Source: Selaginella moellendorffii
Taxonomy: Eukaryota > Plantae > Lycopodiophyta
DNA: 64,000 nt
Reading direction: 5' to 3'
Assembly (NCBI RefSeq): GCF_000143415.4
Contig: NW_003314362.1
Span: 186,001 to 250,000 of the forward strand
The position numbers were made by a program, and so were the translations under genes. The notes beneath the pieces were generated by a model that had not been told where the DNA came from, ran no database searches, and saw nothing but the letters and a program-made list of their open reading frames with translations. This document shows positions 10,881 through 26,440 of this stretch, piece after piece (position 1 is the first letter of the stretch; each line of letters opens with the position of its first letter).

Positions 10881-11127
10881 AATAGCCCTTTTCTTTTCTT
10901 GTCGTGGATATTCTCTGTGTCGCTGGCGGGAACCAAACACGTAGCGTCCATGGCGTGGTCGAATGGTGGACACGTACGAGCAAAACAAGCAATGCTTGTA
11001 TTTAGGTCGCGAAGGAGCGCCTCGTGTCTACACCTTTTTCTCATCGCTAGGTACACACTTTTTCGATTGATCGGTCGATCGATCGCTCTGATCGAGCTCG
11101 CATTCTAGCAGCGCCCGAGGTTTCGCG

Positions 11128-13894
<2,767 letters not shown>

Positions 13895-15620: not shown

Positions 15621-16302
15621 CCCCACAGAATCGAGAGGATACAACGTGTGAAGCAAGCCGACTGGATCTTTGCCAGTACTTTCACGGCTCTGTGCTCCGG
15701 GCCATGCAAGGACGGGTCCTCCTTCCAGTTGCTCCGGTTCTCTTCTTAGATATCAGCGACATATCGAGATGACCATCGATGATTCTGTGGAAGACGACCG
15801 GTGTATAGACTGGCTAGACAGACAAGAGCTCTTTCGGTGGTGTATGTCTCGTTTGGCAGCATCGCTCATCTGAACGGCAGCTGGAACAGGTCGCTCGGGG
15901 ATTGGAAGGTTGCTCCTTCCAGTTTTTGTGGGTGATACGGAACGAGTCGGTCCAGACTGTGTCAGCTGACGTTCGAAACGCTTTCACGGAGAAAGTTATA
16001 GGCCGCAGTCTCGTGATTCCATCGGCTCCGGCTCGCGTGCTCAAACATCCTTCATTGGGAGCTTTCGTGACGCACTGCGGATGGAATTCGCAGCAAATGG
16101 TTTGGTGGACAAGTCAGAAGTTGAAAGGGTGGTGAGGGCGGTGTTGGAGGGAGACCAAGGTAGGCAGATCAGGCGAAGGATTGGCTCCTTGAGAGGCGCC
16201 GCAAGGACTGCATTGATGGCCGGGGGACTTCCACGAAAAAGTTTCGAAGAGTTTGCAGAGGCTATGAAGTCTGAGATGCGATCCAGCTTTTTTTTCTACT
16301 AG
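15600..16302 (+). pseudogene. UDP-glycosyltransferase (GT1) pseudogene, C-terminal half
   Basis: CIDWLDRQ, FLWVIR, a broken PSPG box (VLKHPSLGAFVTHCGWNS) and EVERVVRAVLEG, spread over frameshifts. Confidence 0.85.
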
Positions 16303-16357
16303 CCTGTCTACTGGCATGGCGGTATACCGCTCTGGCAGCCATGTTCCTTCGACTTAA

Positions 16358-16880
16358 CTATACCAATCGTTTTGAGATCAAGTCAACAAAGGCGGACAAG
16401 TTCCTATCGGATGAGCCACCTTCTGTCACGGTACTTCTAATTTCATTTCTAAGTTCTATGGCTCTTTTCCTGATTTCTTTTCCAGGATCTTCCACCATGA
16501 GCCGCCTGATCACTTGATGAACCACCTCCTTGCTCGCCACACCGTGACAGGAGCCTCGGAAAAAGCTCGGCCCGACCTTCCAGTCGCCGACGATGATCTT
16601 ACAGTTGAGATGTTGCTCGGCGAAGCAAGGCCAGCACAGCAAAGGAACTCCACTGCACACGGCTTCTAAGGTGGAATTCCACCCAGTGTGTTCGAAAGCC
16701 TTCAACGGAAGGATGCTTGAGAACTTGAAGCTGCGGTGCGCAGGATATCACCAGTCCCTGCGACTTTGTCCTCACGACGACATCCTCAGAAGTTAGCTTC
16801 AGACTCGCCTCATCACCCACAGGAATGGCTCGATTCGAGGCCTAGAGCTAACCGCTCTATCTGGTCCGCCACCGAGTCCC
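16358..16880 (-). pseudogene. UDP-glycosyltransferase pseudogene, C-terminal part, convergent with the previous one
   Basis: CAPQLQVLKHPSV / GWNSTLEAVCSGVPLLCWPCFAEQHLN (PSPG box split by a frameshift) and GGSSDRNLSAFV*. Confidence 0.85.
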
Positions 16881-17651
16881 GAGTCGGCCTCCTCGAGAGC
16901 GTCTAGAACGGCTAAGAGTTGGCTCGTGTTCGGCGGGCTAGCGATGTGGCTGAGCTCCAAGACGCTGGGAGGGAGTGAAAGGACGCGGACGTGAGGATTG
17001 GGGGAGCGCTGCGTCTTGCTGTGGAACTAGGAGCGTGGTGGTGAGATCTAGGCCGTTTCCACGGCCTAGATCGACTTGAAAAGCATTCTACCACCTGTAC
17101 AATAAACTTGTAGTTCCCAAGTCTGTGAAAGGAGTTTACTGGATCTCTGAAAGAGATGTCCTCTCTGCACCAAACAAGATAAGCCACTCTACGTTTACTT
17201 CAGGGTAAACTTTCAATGCATTTTTCCAGGAGCGCTTGTGTATTTCGGCGCAGATATGCTTTGGCGATCAGTAGCTGCAATACCATCCCGACAGAAAGAT
17301 CGGCATTGCACCCCATCGCTCGCAGGTAAGGCCGCAAGCATCTCTGATGGCAGCAGCTGGCTATTAGGTACTCGGCCTGGACGATCTACTGCTTACTGCA
17401 AATGTCGAGGAGGCATCCGGAAGCGGCGAAATTCAGCAGCACGAGAAGGCGATTCTGTCACAGCCTTCTAGGCCTGGAATCAAGTTTGAAGAACACAAGA
17501 AGCTACGAAAAACTTGATGACAGCGCCAGAAATAAATCTTTCAAACTTTTCCGAAAGACCTACCTGATATAGGAAAGTGGAAAAGGTTCCTAAAATGGTC
17601 AGTCGCAAACATTTAAGGGTGTCAATCTCGCCTGGAAAACCCTAGGAGAGA

Positions 17652-18613
17652 ATGACGCAAGAGGCTACTGAGGTCGTGCGCTTGGGAGCAGGGAGCTTTG
17701 CCACAGTCTACGTATGGCAATCGCGCAACAACCTTGCGATTAAGTGCTTGGCGGATGTCAGTCGCATTCCCGACCTGCTCGAAGAGTTTGAGAATCACCG
17801 GAAGGTAAGCAGGGCGTGCGAGTGCGCCGGAAATCTCTTTCTGGTGCCCAAGGCCATGGAATTCTTCCCGTCTCTTGCATCACTGGGGGAGCGCCTGCGA
17901 ATGGATTCGTCGCTCCTGCCAAATATACCAGCTGCGTACACGATGCAGCGAGTCTGGCCCGTCCCACCGGCTCTTGCGGATTCCATCAGGGCCAAGTTCT
18001 TCCCCTCGCTCCACTCCGACTACTCCAAGCCCTTCATCGCACGGATCTACTTGGGTGCAAAACCCCAGCGCATGGTTTCTCGATTCTTCAACGCCAACAA
18101 CTTTCCGCTGGATGCCAATCGTTGCAAGGAGCTGGGGCTGCCGGTTGAGTCACTGGCCCAAGACATGGGTAGACTTCTCGCCAGGATCCATCATCTCGCA
18201 GGTGTCTCAGCTTTACTTTATTTTTCATTCCTGCTTTTTTACATTTCCCTTCTTTTCCAGGACTGGATGGTCGTGACATCGAGTTTGTCGTAGGTGGCGA
18301 CGAGCTGAGGAGCTTCTCCGAGCCCGGGTTTTCCTGCTTTGATTTCAACCAGTGCAAGCCTCACAACGACAATGTGGACGCACTCGTGCACAGCTTCTTT
18401 GACAATGATCCCTACTATCCTCGGCCTGGCATGGAGTTTTGGGACGATTTCAAGGACTGGTACCTGCGGGAAGCCGTGCTTGCTCCAGACAGGGCAAAGT
18501 CTGTACGTCTGGGAAGGATGTTCCTGGACATGGTTGAAGCCAAAGTGGCAGACAAGACCGCCCAAGAAGCTCCAGAAGGCAGGGGCAATGAGATGGCGCT
18601 CCTGGAGAGTTGA
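17652..18613 (+). CDS. DUF3669-type protein-kinase-like-fold protein (300 aa); exons 17652-18201 and 18261-18613
   Basis: The 59 bp GT-AG intron 18202-18260 joins two ORFs in frame (903 nt). Motifs LGAGSFATV, LAIK, MQRVWP, RIYLG, NNFPL, MGRLLARIHH.AGLDGRDIEFVVG, FDFNQC and FFDNDPYYPRP match my recollection of fungal DUF3669 proteins. Confidence 0.8.
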
Positions 18614-18696
18614 AAGTAGGGCGCTCTTTGTTTGAACGACGTTTTTGAAGTAACATAACATGGCTTGCTATCTGAAATTTATATTTCTTGTAGCAC

Positions 18697-18891
18697 CTAC
18701 GAGTGGAGGTCTTGGGAGGAGCGGGAGCTCGAAGTTGTGAGTGGTGTTAAAGGAGATGAGCGTCGTATTGAAGAGTGCTGTCCATTAGAGCTCTCCAGGA
18801 GTTGGAGACTGCTCGGCACAAACCTCGATAGGATGTTCTCAAGAGCAAGCTCATCGCAGAGACCGGGAATGAGATCGCTTGGAGCAGCCAT
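18697..18891 (-). pseudogene. F-box domain fragment (F-box/kelch type N-terminus)
   Basis: LIPGLCDELALENILSRFVP resembles the LIPGLPDELAL.CL.RVP start of F-box/kelch proteins; there is no continuation. Confidence 0.55.
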
Positions 18892-19148
18892 CGCTCATAT
18901 CGCTCCTATCCTGAAACCGAGTGTTACAAAACGGCAAGCAAACGCAGATCAAGGAAGAGCTCACAACGCACTCACAGATCGTCCGCCTTAGAGCGCGTTA
19001 TACTTTGCCGCTGCTATACTAATGTAAGTTTGTCCTCTTTTTCTTGTACTGTTTCTCATGTCTTGTTCCTTGTGATTTTCAGAGTGCTGCGGTGGAAAAA
19101 CCGAGACAAAGGATCAATCGCATCGAAGAAACAGGCACATACTCATAC

Positions 19149-20035
19149 TTAAGTCATCCGTGTGAAGCAAGTGATCGTCATGGGAAAGCCAGCAACTGGT
19201 TCCCACACCATCCTTCTGCTTTCCTTTGAAAATCTTGCAGCATTTAGTTTTCTTCGGATGAATCGACGTCGAGCCTGCGTAAAGGACGCCCCGGATAAAA
19301 AATAAAAATTGAATCTCGCTGCTTCTTCGGGCCTGTTCTCTGCAATCGCCACCCAAGTCTTTTGCACTGCCGAGTTATACCAGTGTATAGCGTTGCCATC
19401 GAGGTAACCGTAGGTGATGGCATTGCTTCCCAGCTTCACCGGAGCTTCAAAGCAATCACCACTCACTACCGTGAGCGTCGAGTTCCTGTGCTCTGTCTAC
19501 CTTGGTATCTCCTCTTACGGCTTCCACGCACGCACTCGACGCAGCATCGTAGCGCATAAGTTCCACTGTCTCCTTGTGCCACTGTAGACCATACAAGTTC
19601 TCGTCGCCAGCCGGCGAGAGCGCCACCGCAACGTTGGAAAAATTCCACTTTCCAATAGTGTTCCACGCGTCCACCTTCATACCAAATACTCTGACGTCCA
19701 GCTTGACAGGAGCATGGAGGCTGTAGGGAGATGCCCTGTTCTCCCAAGTCGAGTATATCTTGCCACTGAAAGCGATGGCGTCGAACCAGTTACTGGACTT
19801 TTGGGCCGGAATCACGTCCCACGTCCAGTTAGCACCACCGACGTCGAGCTTAAAGATGAGATCTCTCGAAGGTGACCAGCACTTGCCTGGTGCCAAAGTC
19901 CACACGAGAACCATGCCGGACCATGCAACAATCTTTGCTCGTCCCTCGCGTAGATTCTCTATCGGCGGGAGCTTCCGCCACACCTGTGACCCCTGTGACC
20001 TGTCCGAAATGAGAGCTTCGAGTACCTCGTATTCG
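19149..20035 (-). pseudogene. Kelch/beta-propeller-like fragment, frameshifted
   Basis: VWRKLPPI, WTWDVIP, AIAFSGKIY, AWNTIG and IHWYNSAVQKTWV are W-rich blade-like repeats split over two frames. Confidence 0.45.
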
Positions 20036-20627
20036 TTTCCCAGACAGACCAAGTATCTCAGCTGCCTCGATTGGCTCGATCGCCAGCCGCCACGATCCGT
20101 GCTCTATCTCCTTTGGCAGCATAGGGGCGATGAATTTCTCGCAGCTGGAAGTCCTGCTCGATTGGGTGCCTTGCCCGGATCTCGTCTCGGACATGGGAGA
20201 GGAAGAACACGCAAGATTCCTTGACAGGGCGCGCGATCTAGGCCTCGTCGTTCGCTGGGCGCCGCAACTCCAGGTCCTCCGCCATGGATCAACCGCGGCG
20301 TTCCTCTCTCACTGTCCACGTTTGAGAGCATTTGCGCTGGAGTGCCGACGATCTGCCAGTCTTGCTTCGCGGAGCAAAAGGCCAACGTCAAGTACGTCGT
20401 GGAGGTGGGCGTGAAGCTCACAAAGGGTCGTCGTGGAGATTTCTCCAAAGAAATCTTCACCGCTGCGCGCCGTAAGCGCGGTGATGGGCGGTGGCGAGCA
20501 GAGCGATTCGATCCGGAAGAGAGCCGCGGATCTGCACGATGCGTGCCGGAAGGATTTCCAAGAGATGCCGAGCGCGGAATTCTCAACGGCTAAGATCGAA
20601 CCCAAGATATCCGACGGCTCCGTTTAA
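20030..20627 (+). pseudogene. UDP-glycosyltransferase pseudogene, C-terminal part
   Basis: [40 protein letters not shown] and [16 protein letters not shown] in three different frames. Confidence 0.85.
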
Positions 20628-22760: not shown

Positions 22761-25361
22761 CTCGAGAAAATAACACCGTCACCATCTTTGGCTTGTCGTT
22801 GTAGTAATTGGAGCTTGGGGTGGCGATTGGGGCGCCGATCAGGCTGGGATGCCAGTCTCGAGCTCACACGGCAATGCCCTGGTTCCATCCGATGCAAGTG
22901 TCTGTCCAGTTCTTGGCAGAAGACGATCTCGGCGATCGCCAATGGAGCATCGTAACGCGGCGATGATTAGTTGGACCTGTCCTCTATCATGACTCACAGC
23001 CATTCGAAGGTTGCCAAAACTCTTGGGCATCGGCAAACCGGTGTCCAGGGTCGTGTCCTGTCTCTGCTCCGCTCAATAGCTTGCCGCTCAGCGTTCGTGT
23101 TCTCACTCTGTGCGATCGTAACAAGGCTGCATTGCGAGTCACGCGAGGCGCAAGTTCCTCCTCCAAAACTATTATCGTTCCAAGCGAGAGACACATTCCA
23201 GGATCCCTTCTTTCTGGGCTAGATCGATCGCTTCTTTCTGGGCTAGATCGACCACTGTCTTTTTTGTCTCTCGAGCCTGCGGGAGGGAGAAACAAGGAAA
23301 TTCCAATATCACGGAGAAACTCCAACATCGCCTACACTTGAAAAAAGTGCTTTTAGGTGGTTCTCTGGCTGTGGATTCGAACCTGTGACCTTGCCAATAA
23401 ATCTCTTTATTCTAGCCAGATATCCGGCCAACAGGTTCCCGTCCAAATTAAACATTAATAGCCTGTTAAAGTGTTTCGCTTGTTCTTGATTTTGAGTGAA
23501 TGGCACGCGTGCTGATTTCTTGTTCCGTATCAATCACGTGGGCAAGGTCGCGCGAACGTTTCCAAGCCTCTCTTCTTGGTTCCAGGATTTTTTTTGGAGC
23601 AAAATTTGTTTCTCGGAACAAGAAAAGTTTCTGGAAAATGAGCAAGTTTGATTTGATCCAACCACCCTCTTGAAGAGCAGAGTTGAGAGGCATCTGGAAA
23701 TGTCAAGAGTGCTGGAGGTTGGGGTATTTATTTGTTTCTCTCTTCTTTGCAAGATCAAATCCTCTGGCCATGTTCAAGACCATGAAATTAAATACTCACT
23801 CCCAAGGCACATCCCTGATTTGGTGCAACTGATTAGACTCAGAACCTGAGGATTGATGCACCAGTGATTCCGTTGTTATTCACTGCAGCCTGTGAGAGCC
23901 TTGATCGAGCGTCAGGTGAGAGCAAAGAAGAAGCATGACAAGCGGTGGAATGATACAACACAATGATCTGCAAGGACCCACGTCAAGCCACTGCGAGAAA
24001 CTAGAGAGAAGAAAGGCTACGCTCTCGCTCAGCTCCACTCTTTCTTACATGAGATTGGCACAAGCGCGGCAGTCAAACGCTGCTCGAAAGTGTGGAGCAG
24101 CGTATCGTTATCCAGGTCGTCAGTAGTCCTCGGCCATTCGCTATTTTGACGAAGCATGTAGGAGGAGCTAGTGGTGGATTCAAACTTGGACACCCCCTCT
24201 AGCTGAAATGCAATGATACTTTCGTAGACAAGGCTGCATTGCGAGTCACGCGGGCTGCAAGTTTAAGCTCCTCTCCTCGTCCAAACCTGTTGGCGTTCAA
24301 GCGAGCAATGCTGAGACGCGTTCCAGCATGACTTTAAAGCAAAAGGAAGAGTCTGGGCTAGATCGACACACTGACCATGATCATCGTGGCTGCTGCTGCT
24401 GCTCAAGCACTCCAGCGAATTCCATAAAGACCCACCGGCAAATTCTTGCGCGAGCGAAGTAAAATTTAATTGGGTCTCTGGCTGTGGGTTCGAACCTGTG
24501 ACCTTGCCAATAATTGTTTTTATTCTAGCCAGATATCCGGCCAACAGGTTCCCGTCCAAATTATGCATTAATAGCTTGTTAACGTGTTTGTTACTTTCAT
24601 GAATCGTTTCTTGAAATTCTGGGCATGGCGCTCAGCTGGCACGCGAATGTTTCCCATCAGTTTGATTTGATCCAGGCACCCCCCTCAAGAGCACCGGTGC
24701 GTTCTGCCCAAGAGATTCGAGTTGCAAGGCATCTGGAAATGTCAAGAGTGCTGAAGGTTGGGGTTAGTTGTTTCTCTCTTCTTCGCAAGATGAAACCCTC
24801 GGGGAGCTTAATTCATCAAGACACCACCCAAAAGCTTCCAGTCTGATGCTTGTTCCTATAGAAAAACCATGTTCAAAACCATGAAACAAAACAGAACATC
24901 TTTGAGTTGGTGCAACTAACTTAGACTCAGAACCTAAAGCTTGTTGCATCAGTGATATCCACTGTAGTCTAGTCCCAGAGTACGTTGTGAGAGCCTTGAT
25001 CGAGCATCAGGTGAGAGCAAACAATTCCTCAAGAGCTGCTTGCAGGTTTAGACTCTGCATAGCTGATGGCTGACAAGAGAAGAAGCATGGCAAGCGAGGC
25101 GATGATACAACACAAGGATCTGCGAGGTTCGAAGAAGTCCCTCAACTGCTCCTGGGTACGTTAAGCCACTGCGAGCGTGGTAAGGGACATGAAAACGTGA
25201 CTCCACTAGCCTAGTCACACCCACAAGCTTATGCGAAGCACTGCACTCGACACATCGCTTGGCGAAAATCGAAAGGTGGCAAAGATGAGGAATGAAGCTC
25301 AAGACAGTCTCTTGTGCGTTCTTGAGCGATCTGGACAAGAGTATATACATACCGCTTTAAA

Positions 25362-25631: not shown

Positions 25632-26440
25632 TTGTTCTTGACGACGAGGAGGAGACGCTGCTCTGATCGTCATAGATTCCTCGCGAATTTCGTCATGGAA
25701 ATGTATGGAAAGTGCGGGCGCGCCGCGGATGCCTTGGGTGTCCTCCACAAAATGGAAGATGGAAATGTTTTCTTCTGGAACGCATTTGCCCACAGCAGGC
25801 AAATGCCAGAGGTTCTGGTGCTCTTTCGGCAAATGCTCGTCGATATCGAATTCTTGCAGCTATCAAAGGCGATGTGGCGGAGATCCAGGTGAGAAACACC
25901 AGGAACCTCGACTTAAGTTGGCAGAAGGCCCGCTCCAGGCCTGGTTGAAAGACTACTGCTGGAGGGTAAATCAACCACGGCCTTTGGAGGAGGCCATACC
26001 CCTGCTGTCTGATCTCCTCGCAATCCTGGAGCTGAGACAATAACACCGTCACCATCTTTGGCTTGTCGTTGTAGTAATTGGAGCTTGGGGCGGCGATTGG
26101 GATGCCAGTCTCGAGCTCACACGGCAATGCCCTGGTTCCACCCGATGCAAGTGTCTGTCCAGTTCTTGGCAGAAGAAGATCTCGGCGATGGCATGCTCGC
26201 CAACGGAGCACCGTAACGCGGCGATGATTAGCGCGTGGATCTCCCCTGGATCGGCATTGATAGCTGCCAAGAGAAATAACTGGATGCTCGGAAAAGAGTA
26301 ACAAGGGCAAATGCCGCGATCGCAATCTTCCACGAGAAAGAACCTCGATCTTTCATCTTCTGGAAGATTTCCAGCGCCCGCACTTTCCATACCTTTCTAT
26401 GACCAGATTAGCAAGGAACCTCGAGGCCGCTGGAGACGAT
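25632..26440. pseudogene. Two paralogous PPR fragments in inverted orientation (25632-25892 +, ~26230-26440 -), repeated in each unit
   Basis: ATGGAAAGTGCGGGCGC occurs on + at ~25705 and on - at ~26373-26389; both read ..LAN.V.E.YGKCGR. Confidence 0.75.

Follow-up and report, generated by a model that had tools for sequence, protein, structure and literature searches.

A Selaginella moellendorffii DUF3669 gene with a predicted minimal kinase-like fold and a likely long residence in plants

Proteins of the Bud32/PRPK and RIO groups have a minimal kinase fold, which lacks an activation segment, and act on partners in tRNA modification or the ribosome, and related folds in APH, MTR kinase, PsiK, and WaaP serve small molecules. 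Here, we describe a gene for a protein with a predicted fold of this kind, found at positions 17652 to 18613 of a 64,000-nt stretch of Selaginella moellendorffii DNA (assembly GCF_000143415.4, contig NW_003314362.1, positions 186,001 to 250,000 of the forward strand; hereafter, the window). Its 300-residue product (P0001) belongs to the Pfam family DUF3669 (PF12417). In the literature, this name refers to an oligomerizing stretch of vertebrate KRAB zinc-finger proteins, which a preprint derives from LINE-1 ORF1p; one paper considers the Pfam DUF3669 model to be degenerate and to mix in fungal sequences. The PF12417 proteins of Dikarya (e.g., Colletotrichum, Exophiala, Tricholoma, and Lentinus) share all family motifs and the full-length predicted fold with P0001, but they are only 25 to 37% identical to it and are longer (350 to 470 versus 300 residues). 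Unlike its fungal counterparts, the Selaginella gene belongs to a separate plant clade that has a phase-1 intron of its own. An earlier note on the window took the gene to be of fungal type and a candidate for fungus-to-plant transfer, with patchy retention as a fallback. The reading that we favor, and hold as a whole to be fairly probable, is that of a genuine, expressed, and selected gene for a minimal-kinase-like DUF3669 protein, which is an old plant resident and most likely arrived by vertical descent.

Gene model, expression, and selection

Read over positions 17300 to 19000, the window contains a two-exon open reading frame (ORF) on the plus strand (17652 to 18613), with its ATG at 17652 and a TGA stop codon at 18611 to 18613. 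The spliced model is letter for letter that of S. moellendorffii LOC112342192 (300 residues), i.e., P0001, which NCBI labels as an "uncharacterized protein" and which a word search with exon 1 retrieved at 100% identity across that exon. Both the window gene and its Pfam family are therefore entries already present in databases. For the Pfam and word searches the two exons were queried separately, and the later protein-level analyses used P0001. Exon 1 (17652 to 18201, +) specifies residues 1 to 183 and the first base of the Gly184 codon; according to the secondary structure of the model described below, it would contribute the N-lobe and helix E of a kinase-like fold. Exon 2 (18261 to 18613, +) specifies the rest of Gly184 to Ser300 and the stop codon, and its translation contains the catalytic-loop equivalent, DFNQ, NDPYYPRP, and the C-terminal helices. 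The Gly184 codon is interrupted by a phase-1 spliceosomal intron of 59 nt (18202 to 18260, +), which has GT..AG ends, is pyrimidine rich, and has a GC content of 34%.

Exon 2 alone matched PF12417 with 38.4 bits (E value of 1e-9), well above the gathering cutoff of 22, and P0001 matched it with 37.8 bits over residues 210 to 255 (18338 to 18475, +), a stretch that includes NDPYYPRP at 18404 to 18427; no Pfam family matched exon 1 alone. All the motifs by which the earlier note had recognized the family (RxYLG, NFPL, H..D..D.EFV, DFNQ, and NDPYYPRP) are present in P0001 and are 81 to 99% conserved in an alignment of 206 family members, on which all conservation figures given here are based. Its DUF3669 assignment thus stands, and the ORF, splice sites, and motifs lie where it had placed them. 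When 10 longer relatives were checked for domain fusions, DUF3669 was the only domain present. The best explanation of the 300-residue product is a single-domain, cytosolic-looking protein of the DUF3669 family. The Pfam label of PF12417, "Zinc finger protein," stems from vertebrate KRAB zinc-finger proteins. Since both this label and the literature concern those vertebrate proteins, the label is uninformative here and misleading for the spikemoss protein. Our literature search returned nothing on kinase-like DUF3669 proteins or on the locus tags considered in this work.

A stretch identical to the gene occurs in 20 public runs from nine studies. In four of these runs, from four studies, comparison with positions 17300 to 19000 yielded one contig of about 1 kb each, starting between 17586 and 17668 and ending between 18647 and 18736. 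These four contigs have zero mismatches, and their sole joint leaves out precisely the 59 nt that are bounded by GT and AG, which bears out the short intron predicted in the earlier note. They also set minimum extents for the 5' untranslated region (17586 to 17651, +; the contigs of runs X2, X5, and X7 start at 17586, 17617, and 17627, respectively) and the 3' untranslated region (18614 to 18736, +; X1 ends at 18736, and X2, X5, and X7 end at 18647 to 18670). The RNA status of the runs is a guess, which is a weak point in the case for expression; their small size, their gene-bounded contigs, and the removed intron are nonetheless as expected of transcripts. The window gene is probably expressed, its spliced form being present in the four runs.

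Selection can be assessed with the help of a paralog, SELMODRAFT_424621 (LOC9653386), which lies on a different scaffold, is intact, and encodes a protein 84% identical to that of the window gene; its intron of 59 nt occupies the same site. Between the two copies, with counts made exon by exon and then summed, the nonsynonymous and synonymous divergences (dN and dS) are 0.071 and 0.38, and the resulting dN/dS of 0.185 is far below neutrality (Fisher test, p = 3e-16). The window gene is under purifying selection, which was one of the two accounts that the earlier note had offered for its intactness. DNA similarity between the two loci is restricted to 17636 to 18639 and ends no more than about 20 bp beyond the coding sequence; carriage of the gene by a transposon or a segmental duplication was rejected on this ground. 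Two other models annotated as DUF3669, SELMODRAFT_407275 (483 residues) and SELMODRAFT_412146 (455 residues), are decayed copies: around residues 80 to 135 they read the conserved region in a shifted frame, their true start is cut off, and they continue into unrelated downstream ORFs or sequence. A decayed DUF3669 copy was located in S. moellendorffii GL377571.1 (L010:7939-8853). Since the paralog is intact and selected and the other two models are decayed, S. moellendorffii has at least two copies that are intact and under selection, the window gene among them.

These data also bear on whether the gene belongs to the plant at all. Fungal contamination or a misassembled scaffold would agree with the fact that the DUF3669 family is best known from fungi, but the gene resides on a 641-kb scaffold (GL377666.1) with plant genes, its intact paralog and decayed copies are on other Mb-sized scaffolds, the identical sequence recurs in the 20 runs from nine studies, and no fungal protein exceeds 46% identity. 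The 59-nt intron, a size typical of S. moellendorffii, further argues against a foreign sequence. This explanation is refuted for practical purposes, and we give it next to no weight.

Predicted fold and candidate chemistry

An AlphaFold2 model of P0001, computed from a nine-sequence alignment, has a predicted local distance difference test score (pLDDT) of 81.6 and a predicted template modeling score (pTM) of 0.82. Every one of the top 50 rows from VIA-align was kinase-like, as were nearly all of those from Foldseek. Yeast Bud32 was the nearest structure (Z score of 13.3, root mean square deviation [rmsd] of 3.6, 204 of 236 residues aligned), followed by the archaeal KAE1-Bud32 fusion (Z = 12.5), Arabidopsis KEOPS Bud32 (Z = 12.3), RIO1 (Z = 11.3), MTR kinase (Z = 10.4), APH(2'') (Z = 10.2), RIO2 (Z = 10.1), WaaP (Z = 9.6), and PsiK (Z = 9.3). 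Foldseek gave weaker but agreeing matches, with PknB and PRPK at E values of about 1e-3. The entry of the ESM Atlas that came closest in shape was an Ascomycota DUF3669 cluster, with a template modeling score (TM) of 0.85 by query over 280 residues and an rmsd of 2.4. Because this cluster matches over such a length, the conserved unit is predicted to be the whole 300-residue protein and not just the 66-residue Pfam stretch. A minimal protein-kinase-like domain of the Bud32/RIO/APH type is the best explanation of the model, in line with the kinase-like fold proposed in the earlier note.

The model is bilobal. Its N-lobe carries a Gly-rich loop, Lys31, and Glu45, and its small helical C-lobe carries D186-x-x-D189-x-E191 and DFNQ; it has no activation segment, APE motif, or substrate-docking lobe. 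The Gly-rich loop GAGSFATV (residues 12 to 19; 17685 to 17708, +) has G12 and G14 conserved in 87 to 88% of the relatives. Lys31 of the LAIK motif (17742 to 17744, +), which lies in strand beta-3 (model strand 28 to 33) and is presumed to bind ATP phosphate, is a Lys in 93% of them. Glu45 (17784 to 17786, +), in the predicted equivalent of helix C (helix 36 to 56), is a Glu or Asp in 94%. The family signature R131-I-Y133-L-G135 (18042 to 18056, +) is similarly well kept (97, 95, and 97% for R, Y, and G), as are N150 (92%) and H180 (86%). At the position of the kinase (H)RDxxxxN motif, following model helix 165 to 182, lies D186-G-R-D189-I-E191-F-V193 (18266 to 18289, +), with conservation of 99% for D186, 94% for D189, 98% for E191, 93% for F192, and 92% for V193. 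The DFG equivalent D211-F-N-Q214 (18341 to 18352, +), whose Asp presumably binds Mg, follows model strand 206 to 210 (D211, 95%; F, 96%; N, 87%; Q214, 87%); we take this DFNQ to resemble the IDxxQ metal loop of RIO. Conservation of NDPY.P amounts to 81 to 86%. The kinase-type landmarks listed in the earlier note thus have counterparts in both the model and the conservation of catalytic-type residues.

P0001 is nevertheless no member of the Bud32/RIO groups with which it has the fold in common. Structural alignments with these proteins show 12 to 17% identity, there is no significant sequence match, and the family has signatures of its own, i.e., RxYxG, NFPL, NDPYYPRP, and the D-x-x-D-x-E loop. 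To our knowledge, no DUF3669 protein has been linked to KEOPS or the ribosome. Members of the APH/choline-kinase group (APH(2''), MTR kinase, PsiK, macrolide phosphotransferase, and WaaP) also share the fold (Z scores of 9 to 10.4 over 185 to 198 residues), but the C-lobe of P0001 is shorter than theirs, and in the Atlas, APH-family clusters rank by shape behind the DUF3669 cluster, with TM values of 0.42 to 0.49.

Conservation and the order of the model elements suggest how such a domain might work. Lys31 and Glu45 would position ATP, Asp211 and Glu191 would hold Mg2+, and Asp186 could serve as the base, with Glu191 standing in for the kinase Asn. The gamma-phosphate may then be transferred to an acceptor or merely hydrolyzed; by analogy with the structural neighbors, the acceptor might be a small molecule or a specific partner protein. 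On this basis, P0001 is probably an active minimal phosphotransferase or ATPase. The part in defense or as a toxin that the earlier note had considered is speculative.

Sequence comparisons alone give a less favorable picture of the kinase assignment. Pfam Pkinase did not match P0001 up to an E value of 5, and sequence/profile searches of the PDB yielded weak matches to the N-lobes of RAF, CK1, and DYRK (E values of 0.002 to 0.1), which include the region of the Gly-rich loop. One relative of P0001 matched Pkinase with an E value of 0.12, in the N-lobe only, and Pfam returned no RIO1, Bud32-type, or APH match for P0001. "Pizza" repeat matches that also surfaced in the PDB searches were rejected as spurious. 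The missing Pkinase match, together with the replacement of the canonical motifs (LDGRDIEF for HRDxxxxN and DFNQ for DFG) and the lack of a visible activation segment in the model, would suit a noncatalytic pseudokinase or scaffold, in which the fold has been kept and the altered loop (DxRDxE) and DFNQ are unfit for phosphotransfer. Yet the Lys, the acidic helix-C residue, D186, E191, and D211 are retained in 93 to 99% of the 206 relatives across kingdoms, a degree of conservation typical of active sites, and the proteins nearest in fold (Bud32, RIO, APH, MTR kinase, and WaaP) have motifs reduced in a similar way and are active enzymes. We consider a pseudokinase unlikely.

Relatives and descent of the plant gene

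An HMMER scan retrieved 773 cluster representatives at E values up to 0.001, 32 of them at E values up to 1e-30. The closest named relatives are green-algal homologs, KFL_000080260 of Klebsormidium nitens, QJQ45_024005 of Haematococcus lacustris, and Chrsp206S03285 of Chlorokybus, which are 39 to 53% identical to P0001 and have the same motifs and length, but which form no resolved clade with Selaginella. By group, identity to P0001 is 49 to 53% in Klebsormidium, 48% in Haematococcus, 42 to 46% in chytrids (Thoreauomyces, Powellomyces, and Rhizophlyctis), 39 to 42% in Chlorokybus, 31 to 37% in Basidiomycota, and 25 to 30% in Ascomycota. No seed plant, moss, liverwort, or fern was found among the named hits of the profile word search and the HMMER scan. 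Hence, the earlier description of a family that is fungal and not of seed plants holds in its second half; the term "fungal-type" does not, as the most similar named proteins come from green algae and chytrids.

The age of the gene can be gauged from its intron. Relative to P0001, two partial genes are 51% (P0004, on contig L006) and 47% (P0124, on contig L012) identical, and both of their gene calls break off exactly after "RIHxxAG," where the DNA shows a GT intron at the codon position and phase of the Selaginella intron. On L006, about 155 nt of intron are followed by "...LDGRDIEFV..." The two genes and the Selaginella copies form a clade with a support of 97/90 in a tree built on exon-1 parts only. 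The gene adjoining P0124 encodes a leucine-rich repeat (LRR) protein; since, among named proteins, it is closest to the LRR regions of disease-resistance (NLR-type) proteins of plants, the L012 contig appears to come from a land plant. Klebsormidium lacks an intron at the Selaginella site, and the introns of Haematococcus and Powellomyces lie elsewhere. Judged from these sequences, the plant clade would have gained its phase-1 intron at a time when its members had not yet drifted apart to about 50% identity, and for this reason recent arrival is ruled out. The suggestion that the gene had "recently arrived" fails on two counts, a paralog at a dS of 0.38 with the same intron and homologs only 47 to 51% identical that share it. 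There was no recent arrival from a filamentous fungus; whatever its ultimate origin, this looks like a long-standing plant gene.

In a tree of 45 rows, Ascomycota (support of 100/100), Basidiomycota (100/99), chytrids (99/99), and the Selaginella copies (100/99) each form a strong clade, and Selaginella is nested in no sampled fungal phylum. Nesting within fungi was the outcome by which the earlier note would have recognized a transfer; with Selaginella excluded from the Ascomycota, Basidiomycota, and chytrid clades and the family present in green algae as well, its proposal of fungus-to-plant transfer is not borne out. The family spans fungi (chytrids, Basidiomycota, and Ascomycota), green algae (Chlorokybus, Klebsormidium, and Haematococcus), and an intron-marked plant clade, and because this clade is marked by a shared phase-1 intron, a long presence in the plant lineage is indicated. 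The most likely origin is vertical descent from a green ancestor, with loss in most other land plants. Patchy retention, to which the earlier note had given second place, is a better reading than transfer and the best one available; we regard it as reasonably probable and rank it above an ancient inter-kingdom transfer.

Several observations weigh against this ranking. Vertical descent requires several losses, in bryophytes, euphyllophytes, and several streptophyte algal classes, and the backbone of the tree is an unresolved polytomy that joins the strong clades. In approximately unbiased (AU) tests, neither the grouping of Selaginella with all fungi versus the algae (p = 0.319) nor the placement of Selaginella beside Ascomycota (p = 0.386) was rejected, and the same holds for green monophyly (p = 0.235). 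Because of the polytomy and these nonrejected topologies, an ancient transfer between kingdoms in either direction has to be entertained. It would have involved an early fungus, chytrid-like or of an unsampled lineage, and the green lineage or a lycophyte ancestor; thereafter, the gene would have gained its intron, been duplicated, and stayed for a long time. Besides the two AU topologies, this scenario fits the patchy distribution, with no seed-plant match among named relatives, and chytrid proteins nearly as similar to P0001 as the algal ones (42 to 46%). The intron sites of Klebsormidium, Haematococcus, and Powellomyces, all unlike the plant site, are also in keeping with it. However, Selaginella falls outside the clade of every sampled fungal phylum, no donor clade can be named, and green monophyly stands unrejected; moreover, family members occur in two streptophyte algae of early-branching lineages and in a chlorophyte, and these algae have the most similar named proteins. 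We therefore see ancient transfer as a possible but rather unlikely origin, and vertical descent with patchy retention as the preferred one.

Several of the relatives deserve mention in their own right. In K. nitens DF236957.1 (L007:3001-3843), the KFL_000080260 model (238 residues) treats 43 residues as intronic, yet the locus consists of a single uninterrupted ORF of 281 codons with an unbroken alignment to P0001 residues 1 to 255; the annotated intron is probably wrong. Metagenome contigs of up to 840 kb (L003, L004, and L005) encode DUF3669-like proteins of about 250 residues without a Pfam hit, which are surrounded by numerous short ORFs without annotation and by OGFr_N fragments. A viral origin was suspected for these proteins and rejected, as they nest within polypore-type Basidiomycota; the three are probably fungal genome contigs in which introns split the gene calls. 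On a gene-dense and probably algal metagenome contig with a GC content of 64%, another relative (L011:1016-1781) has a 16-nt frame disruption just before its RDVEF loop, which is either a sequencing error or the mark of a broken copy.

Giant-virus footprints have been reported from the genomes of spikemosses and mosses, and the window gene might in principle be a relic of an integrated member of the Nucleocytoviricota. Language-model features of the protein point to clusters made up mostly of Nucleocytoviricota (score of 0.96), and its best viral fold matches are metagenomic proteins of Pithovirus and Marseillevirus (TM of 0.66/0.78, E value of 2.5e-14). These matches, however, are just 16 to 17% identical to P0001, no relative turned up among 2.9 million viral contigs in a pattern scan, and algal and fungal proteins are far closer. 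The neighbors of the gene, a malic-enzyme gene, a UDP-glycosyltransferase (UGT) fragment, and repeats, include no viral genes. A giant virus as the direct source was rejected and seems to us extremely improbable; the viral proteins are distant kin. Among BFVD entries, uncharacterized proteins of Pithovirus LCPAC001, Pithovirus LCPAC304, and Marseillevirus LCMAC201 match the P0001 model with TM values of 0.59 to 0.66 by query and E values of 1e-11 to 1e-14, far better than classical viral kinases do. Going by these models, giant viruses may carry a distant branch of the DUF3669 family.

As a gene, the locus is ordinary, being annotated and belonging to a known Pfam family; the DUF3669 family is the blind spot. 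Its interest lies in an uncharacterized and widely conserved minimal-kinase family and not in gene transfer. The predicted active site has been kept in lineages that range from chytrids to a vascular plant, and the Bud32/RIO-like minimal kinase fold leads to a concrete, testable biochemical hypothesis. We tentatively propose that DUF3669 might be an old eukaryotic family of active minimal kinases or ATPases that has its own catalytic signature (GxG, K, E, D-x-x-D-x-E, and DFNQ) and has been mislabeled. It would persist as a relic in lycophytes and a few green algae, would have expanded in fungi, would have distant kin in giant viruses, and would perform a phosphorylation activity that is new and lacking in seed plants. 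If this is true, the substrate of DUF3669 enzymes would define that activity. The locus also shows neatly that, in an early vascular plant, a gene may be "fungal-looking" and yet old: the shared intron, the selected paralog, and the algal relatives argue against the use of patchy distribution alone as evidence of transfer.

Genomic neighborhood

The malic-enzyme gene model lies at about 10992 to 13894, 3.7 kb upstream of the window gene. Just upstream of the latter, at 16358 to 16705 (-), a 115-residue ORF contains a plant UGT PSPG box and matches Pfam UDPGT with 33.8 bits over profile positions 343 to 385 of 499. It represents a gene fragment, since the remaining UGT is broken into different frames. 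Public annotation has a 108-residue UGT model spanning 15869 to 20419, which encloses the DUF3669 gene. As for a possible head-to-head phosphatase partner, the annotation calls no such gene upstream, either here or at the locus of the paralog. Ten neighboring ORFs were tested against Pfam, and none but the UGT fragment gave a match; the view that the DUF3669 gene is the only clearly uninterrupted one between 14 and 62 kb is roughly right.

Downstream, the region from 22986 to 62000 contains four tandem repeat units of about 9.4 to 10.7 kb, and five ORFs of these units had no Pfam match when tested. The units start near 22986, 32393, 43248, and 53898 and are 95.7 to 98.5% identical to one another. 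They carry the same ORFs, such as one of 178 residues that recurs at 26399, 35775, 46455, and 57083.

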